A stretch of DNA of 64,000 nucleotides, from NCBI GenBank assembly GCA_965240325.2, contig OZ251231.1, positions 1,550,001 through 1,614,000 of the forward strand. The letters run 5' to 3'. Origin of the DNA: Rebecca billardiae RCC1528 (taxonomy: Eukaryota > Protista > Haptophyta). The notes beneath the pieces were generated by a model that saw only the letters and a list, made by a program, of their open reading frames with translations, searched no databases and was not told the DNA's origin. This document shows positions 21,008 through 26,315 of the stretch, in pieces; position 1 is the stretch's first letter, and each line of letters begins with the position of its first letter. A program made the position numbers and the translations under genes.

Positions 21008-21754
21008 TCACTGCTCCACGCCCTCGTGCAGCCTGAGCTCACGCAGCTTGCTGAGGTAGTGCTCGATCTGCTCACGATCAGCGTTGCGGTCCCGTCTTTG
21101 ATGCTTCAGCTCCACCATCCGCGCGATCACCTTGCTGCGCACGTCCTTGGTCGCCGCCTTCACGCTCTCGTCCTCGTCCGCGAGCGTCTTGCGAGCCTCG
21201 ATCAACTGCGTCTTGGTCTGCTCAGCGCGATCGACGAGGTTGCTCACGCGTGTGCCAGCCATCTCTCTCGCGCGTCGATGCGTGCGGAGGTCCATGACCG
21301 CCGCTTTGACGTCGTCGCCCAGCACGGTTTCGTCGAGGCCATTCTTGGGCGCTGCTGGCGGGATGCGGCCTGCCGCTGGTGCCGTCTCGCTCTCGGGAGC
21401 GCTTATGGCCTGCGCAAACTTGCGCAGCTCGTGCTTCAGGTTCGGGCACGTGTCGGGGTAGTTCTGTGCCCACCAGACTCCGCTCAATGTGCCCGTCGTC
21501 GCGCTGATGACGTTGAGCGTGCCGGCATGGCGGGCAGCCATGCCGGCCATGCCGCCGCCGAGGAAAGCAGCACCTGTTTGCACGCGGGGTCGAGCGCAGC
21601 AGGGCGGTGGGTGGTGGGAGATGAGCAGGGCAGGACTCGTCGCCTCCGAGGGCGCTCGTCCACCGCTGCATAGGGCGCGGCGGATGACCACGCCCTTCGC
21701 GCACCGACGATGGGGTTCATGGCGAGCGACGGCGGGCGCGGGCGTGGGGTCCAA
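21008..21754 (-). CDS. Hypothetical protein with hydrophobic segment and C-terminal coiled coil (5' structure uncertain)
   Basis: Coding-like ORF with heptad C-terminus; possible intron near 21578-21680. Confidence 0.5.
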   Translation of the reverse strand: MDPTPAPAVARHEPHRRCAKGVVIRRALCSGGRAPSEATSPALLISHHPPPCCARPRVQTGAAFLGGGMAGMAARHAGTLNVISATTGTLSGVWWAQNYPDTCPNLKHELRKFAQAISAPESETAPAAGRIPPAAPKNGLDETVLGDDVKAAVMDLRTHRRAREMAGTRVSNLVDRAEQTKTQLIEARKTLADEDESVKAATKDVRSKVIARMVELKHQRRDRNADREQIEHYLSKLRELRLHEGVEQ

Positions 21755-21862
21755 GACTCGTGTATGGTGGGATCCTCACGCGACCGCGCAGAAGCCGGGC
21801 CGGACTTCATGACTCTGTCAGGACAGACACGTCTGGCGCCCGTCGCCTCGTCTCCGCGGGCG

Positions 21863-24800
21863 ATGGCGGACGACGGGGGCCTCACGCTTCCATGGCTGGA
21901 GCGCCGTCTCGCAGAGTTGCTCGGGGCCGAAATGAGCCACACTGACCTGGCGAACATGCTCCTTGAGATGAGTGACGCGGATCTCGAATCATACGCCGTC
22001 GTTCTTCTCGGCGACGATGCCGGCGCCGCATTTGGGCGCGAGCTCATCGAGCAACGCAAGCGTTCGCCGCCCGGCGCGAGCGCGAGCGGCTCGGAGGGCG
22101 GCGCCCGCGGCGCGCGGCCAGTCACACCACCTTCGGCAGCGGCGGAGGACGCCAAGGATGCCTTCTACCGCCTGGGTGCCGCGGCCACCAAGCCGGCACG
22201 AGACGAGAGACCCAAGGGCGGTGCGGGTGGCGGCGGTGGGGCGAAGAAGAAGAAGGCCGCGGCAAACGAGGCGGCTGCGCGCGACGCACGGCGAGGCGCC
22301 GCGTCGAACACGCTCCCTGGGCGGCGCATGTGCACCTGCCTCGCCACGCGCCACGCGCTGCTCACCAACTGCCTCTCGTGCGGCAACATCGTGTGCGAGC
22401 AGCAAGGAGACGGCGAGTGTCTGTCGTGCGGCTCTGACCCGGACGTGTGCGCGCCGGCCGCCGGCCGCGAGCTGGGCGAGGGCGCGTCCGAGAAGGCGTT
22501 CGCGCATCGAGACAAGCTTCTCCACTTCGAGCGCACCTCGGCGAAGCGCTCCGTCGTCATCGACGACCAGGTCGACTACTGGGACACGACTGCCGACGCG
22601 TGGCTCTCCGCGTCCGAGCGTGAGGCGAACGCAGAGCGGCGGCGCGAGGCGGCGGAGCGCCTGGAGGCGGCCAAGCGCGAGCTCACGGTCTCGATCGACG
22701 TGGGCGCGGGCGAGGTGGTGCAGGAGTCGCTGGGCTATCGGCGCGCGGGCGAGGAGCTCGCGCTCACAGGCGCGGGGCCTCAGGCGTCGGCCGCGCCGCG
22801 CTCGGCTGGCGGCGGCGGCGGCGGCGGGAACGGCTGTGCCGACGGCGCGACCGGCGGCGCTGGGCCGCACGCCTCCCAGCTGGATGCCGCTCTCGCCTTC
22901 ATCGCGCCATGGCGTCCACCGCCGGTGGCAGGCTCGCTCGGTGGCGGTGGTGCTGCGAGCGCCGCCGCCGCGTCCACACCCGCTGCAGCCGGCCGCGGCG
23001 CTGCCGCCGGCGGCAGTGGCGGCGGCGGTGCCGGTCCGAGCGCTGCCGCCCGCCCGAGCCTGGTGAACCCTTGGGTGAGGGAGGAGGACCGCCCTCGGTT
23101 CAAGAGCCGCGGGCAGCCGGGCGCCGAGGGCGAGCCGTCCGCCTCGGACGGCGTGCGCGAGCGCGCGTGGGCGGAGGGCCTTCGGCACTCGGCAGCCGCG
23201 GCCAGCGCGCGCGTGCAGGTGCGCGCGCGCCCGCGCCTGCGCCCTGCCCGATCCGGGGGCGCGCCAAGGCGGGACGTGTGCGTGATGGGCGCACGCGCCC
23301 ATCCCAGCGCGCTCGCGCGGGCCACGCCGCCCTCGAGCCGCCCGCATCGCACGCTCGAAAGCTCACCGCCGCCCGCGCCGCCGCCCCCGCCGCCCGCGCC
23401 GCCGCCCCCGCCCCCGCGCCGCGCTCGGGGCTCAGCACGGCAACCCCTGGCTGGCGGCCATCCTGGAGGTCGAGCAGAGGGGTGGCGGGGCGTCCGGCGA
23501 GCCCGGGCTCTCCGGCTTCGAGGCGGAGGTCGCGCGCGCGCAGGCGGAGCGGCAGGCGGCGCTCGCTGCGGAGCTCGCGGCGCAGGAGGCGGCGCAGGAG
23601 CCACCGCCGTGTGGCGGCGGCGGCGGCGCGGCGGCGCGAGGCGCCGAGCTTGCTGCAGCCGATGGGCCCGCGCTCGGGCCGGCGTGGGCGGACGCGCGCG
23701 CGTGCCTCAGCCTCCATCAGCCGTGGGCGTCGCTCGTCGTCTCCGGCGCGAAGGCGGTGGAGGGCCGCAGCTGGAGCTCCGCGCACCGCGGTCCGCTCTT
23801 CATCGCCTCGACTGCGCGCGTGCCTACCGATCTCGAGATCGCGACAGTCCTGGACGAGTACGCGAGGCTCTTTGAGAGGCGGCGCGCGGCGGTGGCCGCC
23901 GCGCGCGCGGCGGGCGTGCCCGCGCCGTGGCCCGCCGAGCCGCCGCCCCTGCCGACCGCGTTCCCCGCCGGCGCGCTGCTCGGCGCGGTCGAGCTCGCCG
24001 ATGTCCTGAACGAAGCTGAATACGAGGCGCGGTACCCGGACGAGAGGACACGCGAGGAGAACGGCTCGGCGGCCCTCTTCCTGCTAGCGCGGCCGCGCGC
24101 GCTGCCCGTGCCGCTGCGGCAGAGGGGCGAGCACAAGATCTACCAGCTCGACTCGAGGGTCGCCGCCGACGCGCGCGCCGCGCTGCTCAGCGTCGCGGAG
24201 ACGCTCGAGTGGCACCGCGCCGGCAGCGGGTGGAGCGACGTGGCAGGCGCGGCGGCGGTGGGCGCGAGCGCTGACGGCGGCGCGGACGCAGTGCCACGCG
24301 CTGCGTCCGACGGCGGCGGCACAGGCACGGGTGGCGCGGATGGCGGGCCAGGTGGCAGCGGTGGCGGTGGCAGCGGTGCTCGGCTCGATCTGCTCGAGGC
24401 GCACGCACTCGCCGCCGCGGCACCGCGCGCGCGCATCGCGCTCGCGCCCGTGCGCGCGCGCGCGGAGGGCGGCGCGCGCGTGCTGCAGGACGGCGTCGTG
24501 CTGCTGCGCGGCGCGGTCGACCTGGCCGCGCAGAACGCGGTGGTGGCGCTGTGCCGGGAGCTGGGCGTGGGCGAGGCCGGCTTCTACACGCCGCTCGTGC
24601 GCGACGGCGCGCGCATGCGCCTGCAGATGTTCTGCCTGGGCAAGCACTGGGAGCCGAGCACGCAGCGTTATCAGGACAGCCGCGAGGCGCCGGGCGGCCC
24701 GGCCGTCCGGCCGCCGCCCATCCCGCCTGAGTTGTGGGCGGTGGTCGAGAGCGCCGCGGCCGAGGCGAGCGCTGCGTGCCCGAGCGTGCCGCGCGTCGCG

Positions 24801-25139
24801 CCTGGCATCTGCCTCGTCAACCACTACGCGCACGCCGGCCGGCTGGCCTTCCACCAGGACACGTCCGAGTCGGCCGCGTCCATCGAGCGAGGCTCGCCCG
24901 TCGTCTCGCTCTCGATCGGCGACGCGGCCGACTTTGCCATCGCGGACCACCACCCAGACAGCGCACCGCCGGGCGCGCCGAAGCCTCGGGTCGTCCGTCT
25001 CGAGAGCGGCGACGTCCTCGTCTTCGGCGGGCCGGCGCGGCTCGCGTGGCACGCCGTGCAGCAGATCCACCGCAGGCAGCGCCCAGAGGGGCTTCGCATG
25101 GTCCCCGGCCGCCTCAACCTGACGTTCCGCGAGCTGTGA
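21863..25139 (+). CDS. TRIP4/ASC-1 homolog (zf-C2HC5 + ASCH) fused to AlkB-family 2OG-Fe(II) dioxygenase; intron 23219-23435
   Basis: CTCLATRHALLTNCLSCGNIVCEQQGDGECLSC and VIDDQVDYW; ASCH CLSLHQPWASLVVSGAKAVEGRSW..HRGPLFIAS; AlkB CLVNHY..GRLAFHQD, VVSLSIG, LESGDVLVFGGPARLAWHAV, GRLNLTFR. Intron phase checked. Confidence 0.88.
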
Positions 25140-25469: not shown

Positions 25470-26090
25470 TTACTGCTGGGGACACTGCACGTCGCCGTTC
25501 GCGCCCGCCTGTGCCGCGGGGTCGTCCGCTGTTCCGAGCTTGCGCCGCGCCACAGCCGCCTCGCGCTCGGCCGCCATCAGCTGTTGTGGCTTCTTGTACT
25601 GGATGATGAGCGTGTTGTTCTCGTGCGTCCAGTCGAGCGCGTCAGCACTGAGGGGTAGCTTCAGGCGGTCCATGTCCTCTATCGCGATACGCTTGTAGTA
25701 TTTCTTGTTCGACGTGCGCACGACCACCTTGCGGTCTGCCTCGTCGAGCGTCACTGAGTACGTTGACTTGGGGTAGGGGAGGTTGCGGACGCGCCACTCG
25801 AAGCAGTCTATGCGGTCCGCGCGGGTGAAGACTGGATTGGCAGTGTTCTCCGCCAAGGTCTCGTTGGCGACCGTCGCGCGCGGCGGCGGCGCCCCCACCT
25901 CGTACACCCAGTCCAGCTCGCGGCCGAGCACCGTTTTCGCTCGCCGCTTGCGCACGAGCAGCTGATCTGTCTGCAAGTCGAACTCCTCGATCACCTCAGC
26001 CCCGTCGGGCAGGACGGTGGACACCTTCTTGCGCCCGCCGGTGATGATCGCCGTCTGCTTCGCGCCGGGAGGTGCTGGAAGCGCGCACAT
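25470..26090 (-). CDS. DPCD: DPCD protein
   Basis: GRKKVSTVLPDGAEVIEEFD, NPVFTRAD..FEWRVRNLPYP, VVRTSNKKYYKRI, HENNTLIIQYKKP, C-terminal CPQQ. Confidence 0.92.
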   Translation of the reverse strand: MCALPAPPGAKQTAIITGGRKKVSTVLPDGAEVIEEFDLQTDQLLVRKRRAKTVLGRELDWVYEVGAPPPRATVANETLAENTANPVFTRADRIDCFEWRVRNLPYPKSTYSVTLDEADRKVVVRTSNKKYYKRIAIEDMDRLKLPLSADALDWTHENNTLIIQYKKPQQLMAAEREAAVARRKLGTADDPAAQAGANGDVQCPQQ

Positions 26091-26315
26091 GGGCCTTCTC
26101 CGGGCCGTTGGCGTCGGACGTTGAGGGCCGCGAGACCGCCGCAGCGGGCGCCGCTGCTCCTGACCAGCCGGAGCGGCTCCGCCAGAATGGCGGAAACCGG
26201 GAAAAATCAAAAAACGAGGAAGGAGAAAAAGAAAAGAGCTTGTCAAGAACTGCTCGACACGAGCACGGCGGCCGCTTTCCGTTGAGCATCGGTTTCGAGA
26301 CAGCTGGCTGCAAGG

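Follow-up and report, generated by a model that had tools for sequence, protein, structure and literature searches.

Human TRIP4 (ASC-1), a cofactor in transcription and ribosome rescue and a subunit of the ASC-1/RQT complex, is a partner of the ASCC3 helicase and one of the closest described relatives of the gene product reported here. The zinc finger (ZnF) of TRIP4 by itself suffices for stable binding to the helicase region of ASCC3. Binding puts the TRIP4 ASCH domain at the DNA exit of the ASCC3 C-terminal cassette, and TRIP4 stimulates unwinding. The single strands made by ASCC3 are used by ALKBH3, and TRIP4 and ALKBH3 are mutually exclusive on ASCC3 (PMC10076317). We describe a gene of the haptophyte Rebecca billardiae RCC1528 in which the TRIP4 and AlkB-type parts are encoded as one protein. 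It lies in a stretch of 64,000 nucleotides (the window; positions 1,550,001 to 1,614,000 of the forward strand of contig OZ251231.1, assembly GCA_965240325.2), and all coordinates below are those of the window unless a contig is named.

The locus is almost certainly a single intact two-exon TRIP4-AlkB fusion gene. Judged by its sequence and its relatives, it is a member of a conserved TRIP4-AlkB fusion family. The architecture is conserved, widespread and uncharacterized, and the window adds a haptophyte member. On balance, the explanation that we favor overall is a TRIP4-AlkB fusion protein acting as an ASCC3-docked dealkylase.

Gene structure

The gene occupies 21863-25139 on the + strand and encodes a predicted protein of about 1019 residues from two exons (Table 1). 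The domains run in the order zf-C2HC5, TRIP4 third domain, ASCH, a disordered linker of about 45 residues and an AlkB-type Fe(II)/2-oxoglutarate (2OG) dioxygenase. The initial annotation had named zf-C2HC5, ASCH and a complete AlkB domain; we confirmed all three and add the TRIP4 third domain as a fourth. It had also placed ASCH and AlkB in one uninterrupted exon, making the fusion independent of a predicted splice, and this holds. Both domains lie in the mod3=0 frame, which is open from 23286 to 25136 (617 codons), with no stop and no splice between them.

The splice that joins exon 1 to exon 2 is the only one that the gene model requires. The mod3=2 frame is open from 21674 to 23872. TRIP4 homology follows this frame to ...SARVQ (23218) and is taken up again at HGNPWL (23436) in the mod3=0 frame. 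The splice rebuilds RVQ/HGNPWL, and the removal of 217 nt is supported because the corresponding RVQHDNPWL is contiguous in the intronless orthologs P0001 and P0002. The model is least secure at its start codon: ATG 21863 was picked by homology, and the stretch from 21710 to 21862 holds four further ATGs in the same frame. The GC content of the region is 65-82% in 500-nt windows, with third-position GC of 0.84 in exon 1 and 0.91 in exon 2. All searches, alignments and folds used exon 1 and exon 2 each separately, or one uninterrupted open frame.

Table 1. Features of the TRIP4-AlkB gene, in window coordinates.
Feature	Position	Strand	Details
Exon 1	21863..23218	+	452 codons; TRIP4/ASC-1 N-terminal half; open frame
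zf-C2HC5 zinc finger	22331..22429	+	Pfam PF06221, E 4.4e-9, 36.6 bits (cut-off 25.8)
TRIP4 third domain (TRIP4_3rd)	22565..22726	+	Pfam PF23134, E 3.8e-8, 34.1 bits (cut-off 27.7); exon 1 residues 235-288
Intron	23219..23435	+	217 nt; GT..AG; phase 0; frame change from mod3=2 to mod3=0
Exon 2	23436..25139	+	ASCH, linker and AlkB in a single frame; 567 codons (to 25136) and stop TGA 25137-25139
ASCH domain	23691..24221	+	Pfam PF04266, E 1e-4, 23.4 bits (cut-off 21.2); HQPWAS 23715-23732; octapeptide GAKAVEGR 23745-23768
Linker, Gly/Ala-rich, disordered	24240..24371	+	AlphaFold2 predicted local distance difference test (pLDDT) <50; exon 2 residues 269-312; not alignable among relatives
AlkB-type Fe(II)/2OG dioxygenase domain	24384..25136	+	Pfam PF13532 (2OG-FeII_Oxy_2), E 3.4e-36

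The TRIP4 half

The zinc finger aligns with that of human TRIP4 and keeps all eight zinc ligands, in the pattern C-x-C-x4-H-x5-C-x2-C-x4-C-x7-C-x2-C. The third domain aligns with human TRIP4 residues 262-343. For exon 1, the E-value was 4e-25 against human TRIP4 as resolved by cryo-EM in complex with ASCC3 (chain 8alz_A); yeast RQT4 gave a weak match (E 9e-3). The N-terminal TRI4_N domain gave no Pfam match at E<=0.01, and its weak alignment to the human N-terminus was not significant (-4.1 bits).

The Pfam score of the ASCH domain is low because of an insert within the domain. When compared with the solved human TRIP4 ASCH, the match had an E-value of 1e-25 and extended over chain positions 23-166 of 172, so that the whole domain was recovered in two stretches. 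We modeled exon 2 with AlphaFold2 from an 83-row alignment (mean pLDDT 84.1). ASCH and AlkB both scored above 90 and were separated by a disordered linker. Foldseek matched the ASCH fold to human TRIP4 ASCH (8yew/9kyl) with TMt of 0.87-0.93, and the matches include crystal structures with double-stranded DNA bound. A scan of the linker for bacterial promoters and terminators found none; the models are bacterial and irrelevant for a eukaryote.

The AlkB half

The catalytic motifs of the dioxygenase are intact: HQD at 24852-24860, the distal His of AWHAV at 25050-25052 and RLNLTFR at 25110-25130. They align with H131, D133, H187 and R204-R210 of E. coli AlkB. Across the fusion family, both the catalytic triad and the motif for 2OG binding are conserved. 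In a PDB sequence search the top match was rice OsALKBH1 (5xeg; E 8e-46, positions 7-230 of 231, about 40% identity). E. coli AlkB matched at E ~1e-12 with 26-28% identity and human ALKBH1 at E 1e-4; the same search returned no ALKBH2 or ALKBH3 chain at E<1e-3. Foldseek again ranked OsALKBH1 first (TMt 0.88-0.89) and E. coli AlkB second (about 0.85). ALKBH1 and ABH2 were far lower, with human ABH2 in rows 43-50 and ALKBH3 absent from the top 50. An ESM Atlas feature search returned just generic AlkB/FTO clusters with scores below 0.9.

These rankings agree with the initial annotation, which had put the domain nearer to bacterial AlkB and the ALKBH1-named plant group than to ALKBH3. Its corollary, that any functional parallel with the human ASCC3-ALKBH3 pair would be convergent, stands as well, the AlkB domain not being of the ALKBH3 type. 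The bacterial equivalog models were not reached (NCBIfam PRK15401, 82.7 bits vs a cut-off of 267; TIGR00568, 60.7 vs 231). By these scores, the domain is a homolog of bacterial AlkB and not an equivalog.

One position in the active site sets the window protein apart. Its motif HQDTSE (24852-24869) has Thr and Ser at the equivalents of E. coli K134 and D135. The D135 equivalent is Ser throughout the haptophyte-type clade to which the window belongs (HQD[K/T]SE) and Asp in most other family members. D135 controls AlkB specificity (PMC2800194), and engineered D135S/T variants have higher activity on 1-methylguanine in RNA, while activity on N6-methyladenine came from D135I (PMC7968990). The enzyme may thus accept more substrates than 1-methyladenine and 3-methylcytosine, with 1-methylguanine included because Ser replaces the D135 equivalent.

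The same residue bears on an alternative in which the protein is a transcription-coupled epigenetic eraser: a TRIP4-type coactivator on chromatin whose ASCH domain binds or reads DNA, possibly at N6-methyladenine, and whose AlkB domain removes N6-methyladenine from DNA. Ser is the substitution of the engineered 1-methylguanine enzymes and not that of the N6-methyladenine one (PMC7968990), the active site is equally AlkB-like, and the conserved ZnF is an ASCC3-docking element (PMC10076317). However, OsALKBH1, the top match by both sequence and structure, is a reported DNA N6-methyladenine demethylase (PMC8118384). Iyer et al. suggested that the TRIP4 ASCH may read N6-methyladenine (PMC4738411), and there are solved TRIP4 ASCH structures with double-stranded DNA bound (8yfi, 9kyl). 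Weighing both sides, we regard an epigenetic eraser as an unlikely identity for this protein.

Fusion proteins in other organisms

The reading as an ASCC3-docked dealkylase presupposes that the fusion is real, and its relatives speak to this. Three four-domain proteins (P0002, P0001 and P0013) are each encoded by one intronless open reading frame (ORF) on metagenomic contigs whose GC content is like that of the window. In the haptophyte Chrysotila carterae, a transcriptome-derived protein of 859 residues (P0167) is a complete fusion with the same GRLNLTFREL end. Because three intronless ORFs and a full-fusion transcript encode the same arrangement, the fusion is not an annotation artifact. The gregarines Digyalum oweni and Lankesteria metandrocarpae have complete transcriptome-derived four-domain ORFs, and a 2871-residue gene model of Amoebophrya sp. 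AT5.2 (P0088), probably an over-merged prediction, holds the four fusion domains.

Chrysotila carterae has three UniRef proteins in one 90% cluster (P0016, P0166 and P0167), all from the same gene. P0016 and P0166 start as P0167 does but part from it further on, in one case within ASCH and in the other within AlkB. We read these shorter forms, from their sequences, as intron-retention isoforms. If so, the Chrysotila introns sit where the window gene has none.

Distribution and phylogeny

A word search with exon 1 was flooded by low-complexity words and gave 4 matches, and a profile search was used in its place. The fusion profile had 12,990 matches at E<=1e-3 among 1.84 billion cluster representatives. 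We counted architectures in the best 150 of these 12,990, together with matches found earlier, using hidden Markov models (HMMs) cut from our own alignment. About 15 representatives have ZnF, third domain, ASCH and AlkB, and 8 are ASCH-AlkB fragments. About 18 have the third domain and AlkB, with or without the ZnF, and lack ASCH. Ordinary TRIP4 accounts for about 83, and AlkB only for 26.

Fusions with both ASCH and AlkB were found in haptophytes, gregarine apicomplexans and Amoebophrya, and come to about 20 when counted as clusters at 50% identity. The type without ASCH was found across Viridiplantae, in green algae and land plants, and the absence of ASCH was upheld by Pfam at E<=1. It occurs in the chlorophytes Volvox africanus, Edaphochlamys debaryana, Astrephomene gubernaculifera and Prasinococcus capsulatus, the zygnematophyte Closterium, the liverworts Riccia sorocarpa and Calypogeia fissa, the lycophyte Diphasiastrum complanatum and the fern ally Psilotum nudum. 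The architecture is thus not special to this genome, and a claim of rarity does not hold. It is widespread, and full-text literature searches found no paper describing or interpreting a TRIP4-AlkB fusion. Iyer et al. treat the TRIP4 ASCH and other AlkB fusions, not TRIP4-AlkB (PMC4738411), and the database entries of the fusion proteins carry generic names.

We built a maximum-likelihood tree of AlkB domains with 69 rows, after removing near-duplicates within clusters and seven domains that were partial or too long. The tree is unrooted. The window protein is sister to Chrysotila carterae (support 100/85), its nearest named relative, within an eight-row clade made up entirely of fusions (100/98). 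The green-lineage sequences form a 36-row group (92/97), and two ASCH-less rows fall outside this main group. Within the 36-row group, a streptophyte clade (100/99) contains 16 stand-alone proteins, one of them from Salvia, which are nested among ASCH-less fusions (98/94) of ferns, lycophytes, liverworts and Closterium.

The stand-alone proteins have 96-342 residues ahead of the AlkB domain, mostly more than 200. An HMM made from the ASCH-less fusions found no TRIP4 remnant in the N-termini of those that are seed-plant-like, and these N-termini are unrelated. A 2026 survey lists Ginkgo GbALKBH1B, which is said to keep zf-C2HC5, without comment (PMC13296198). A short motif ahead of the AlkB core, (F/Y/L)D(I/L)C/L, is common to P0011, the 16-row stand-alone clade and PDB entry 5xeg. 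By its motifs, rice OsALKBH1, which was not among the tree rows, belongs with the stand-alone clade. The simplest reading of the sequences is that an old TRIP4-AlkB fusion lost ASCH in the green lineage and then the TRIP4 part in seed plants. We only infer this order, since no root was set for the tree and the main group does not take in two of the ASCH-less rows.

The ASCH-less type is of direct relevance to a second alternative, a double eraser of RNA modifications that works independently of ASCC3. In that scheme the ASCH domain is an N4-acetylcytidine amidohydrolase and the AlkB domain demethylates 1-methyladenine, 3-methylcytosine and 1-methylguanine, both on tRNA or rRNA. The green variant argues otherwise by keeping ZnF, third domain and AlkB together while dispensing with ASCH; the conserved partnership is therefore between ZnF and AlkB and not between ASCH and AlkB. 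What recommends the scheme comes largely from a 2026 preprint (10.64898/2026.02.27.708502), and its support from there is at preprint level only. The preprint reports that human TRIP4 ASCH expressed in E. coli lowers tRNA N4-acetylcytidine, that substitution of the octapeptide Lys is inactivating and that a Glu-to-Ala change was critical for activity, but also that the domain is inactive on free N4-acetylcytidine in vitro. The window keeps the octapeptide as GAKAVEGR, and its Ser at the D135 position is that of an AlkB variant for tRNA 1-methylguanine demethylation (PMC7968990). We consider a double RNA eraser improbable.

Proposed mechanism

A helicase-docked dealkylase was inferred because the docking ZnF and ASCH are kept and AlkB is added on a disordered tether. 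As in human TRIP4, the zinc finger would be the docking element, attaching the fusion protein to the C-terminal cassette of ASCC3/Slh1 and so setting ASCH at the nucleic-acid exit. The flexible linker could then allow the AlkB domain to reach the emerging single strand and oxidatively strip N-methyl lesions (1-methyladenine and 3-methylcytosine, perhaps also 1-methylguanine). Candidate substrates are RNA released from collided ribosomes and DNA that has been unwound. By analogy with the human complex, we find this ASCC3-coupled route to dealkylation plausible, at a confidence just short of even. In the green-lineage variant, ZnF and third domain are kept and AlkB stands at the place of ASCH, an arrangement that, at the level of domain order, fits an enzyme placed at the strand exit.

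It had been proposed at the outset that the fusion would tether a demethylase to the ASCC complex, possibly to repair alkylated RNA at stalled ribosomes, a role that we regard as conjectural. The gene does join TRIP4 to AlkB, but it does not merely add a demethylase to a TRIP4-ALKBH3 assembly that already existed, since TRIP4 and ALKBH3 are alternative partners in humans. Because those two bind ASCC3 in a mutually exclusive manner, what the fusion joins is a pair of alternative ASCC3 partners. By this analogy, the alga would unite in one chain what in humans are two distinct proteins that exclude each other from ASCC3.

Several observations weigh against an ASCC3-docked dealkylase. Human TRIP4 knock-out cells have no sensitivity to methyl methanesulfonate (PMC10076317), and OsALKBH1, the nearest characterized enzyme, is reported to act on N6-methyladenine in DNA and not as a repair enzyme (PMC8118384). 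A near relative of 698 residues (P0207; L006:845-2941) is an intronless TRIP4 that stops after ASCH. P0205 and P0206 also lack AlkB, and P0205 stops 46 residues past ASCH. Judging from these sequences, some lineages can do without the AlkB module, because close relatives lacking it exist. Finally, an internal start may yield a free AlkB protein.

This last point belongs to a broader possibility, that the cell makes separate proteins from the one frame. This could come about if transcription or translation began internally, if the message were polyadenylated early, past ASCH, or if the linker were cleaved by a protease. The linker is long and disordered, P0205 and P0207 end after ASCH, and the two shorter Chrysotila isoforms diverge part-way, all of which would be expected if the halves could exist apart. 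Nevertheless, there is no inter-domain stop in the window or in three intronless orthologs, and complete fusion transcripts are present in the Chrysotila and gregarine transcriptomes. Conservation of the arrangement across several distant eukaryotic lineages points to selection for keeping the halves linked. Separate products are, in our view, very improbable, and an ASCC3-docked dealkylase remains the explanation that we prefer.

Neighboring genes

Downstream of the fusion gene, and tail-to-tail with it, is a gene of the DPCD (ciliary dyskinesia-associated) family at 25473-26099 on the - strand (Pfam E 9e-69), about 330 nt from the stop codon. Its presence suggests an organism with flagella. 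Upstream, a divergent ORF of 248 codons (21008-21754, - strand) overlaps the alternative upstream ATGs. Its C-terminus is charged and resembles a coiled coil, and Pfam gave no match.

We also recorded the neighbors of two relatives. On the metagenomic contig of P0001, the first called gene (L002:3-2180) encodes a reverse transcriptase domain of the Ty1/copia type (RVT_2, E 1e-37) and lies about 2.5 kb upstream of the fusion. A metallophosphatase gene is found between the two, and a cold-shock-domain gene is downstream. P0207 is adjoined by a Peptidase_C69 gene on the opposite strand.

Significance

Gene fusions are among the strongest signs, from sequence only, that two proteins work together. 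TRIP4-AlkB in distant lineages is independent evolutionary support for helicase-coupled dealkylation. The human link between ASC-1 and AlkB-type repair rests on ALKBH3, which is TRIP4's competitor for ASCC3, and the Rosetta-stone logic is sharper because of those competition data. The fusion also predicts the site of the enzyme, at the strand exit and either beside ASCH or replacing it. In addition, the plant ALKBH1B/OsALKBH1 clade would be recast as a derivative of the TRIP4-AlkB fusion. This hypothesis can be approached in organisms amenable to experiment, among them relatives of Chlamydomonas, liverworts of the Marchantia type and Closterium.

More tentatively, we suggest that an AlkB dealkylase may be part of the TRIP4/RQT4 subunit itself in many eukaryotes outside the opisthokonts, namely in haptophytes, alveolates and all of the green lineage. 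Alkylation repair of RNA or DNA would then be ancestral and built into the ASCC3 complex. The plant ALKBH1B/OsALKBH1 enzymes, at present regarded as erasers of N6-methyladenine in DNA or RNA, would descend from such a helicase-docked repair module and might still work with ASCC3. We hold this extension to be possible and clearly less secure than the reading of the window gene itself.

Comparison with known systems

The window protein shares zf-C2HC5, third domain and ASCH with human TRIP4/ASC-1 (in yeast RQT4; PDB 8alz, 7zpq), in the same order and with the G-K-E-R residues of the octapeptide kept. The known proteins end with ASCH, whereas the window protein continues for about 300 more residues of linker and AlkB. 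It also differs from human TRIP4 in having long Gly/Ala-rich inserts and no TRI4_N detected by Pfam.

Rice OsALKBH1 (PDB 5XEG/5XOI) and the plant proteins named ALKBH1B belong to the same AlkB subfamily as all of the fusion proteins. Unlike them, the seed-plant-like proteins in our set have no detectable TRIP4 part, and they have Asp at the D135 equivalent where the window has Ser. E. coli AlkB has the same fold (TMt 0.85), the HxD...H triad and RxNxTxR; the window domain differs from it in the Ser at D135 and in the TRIP4 part fused to it.

The human ASCC3-ALKBH3 module is similar in its proposed logic, with a helicase that makes single strands and an AlkB enzyme that demethylates them (PMC10076317). 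However, human ALKBH3 is a separate protein from another AlkB clade that competes with TRIP4, whereas the dioxygenase of the window gene is covalently part of TRIP4.

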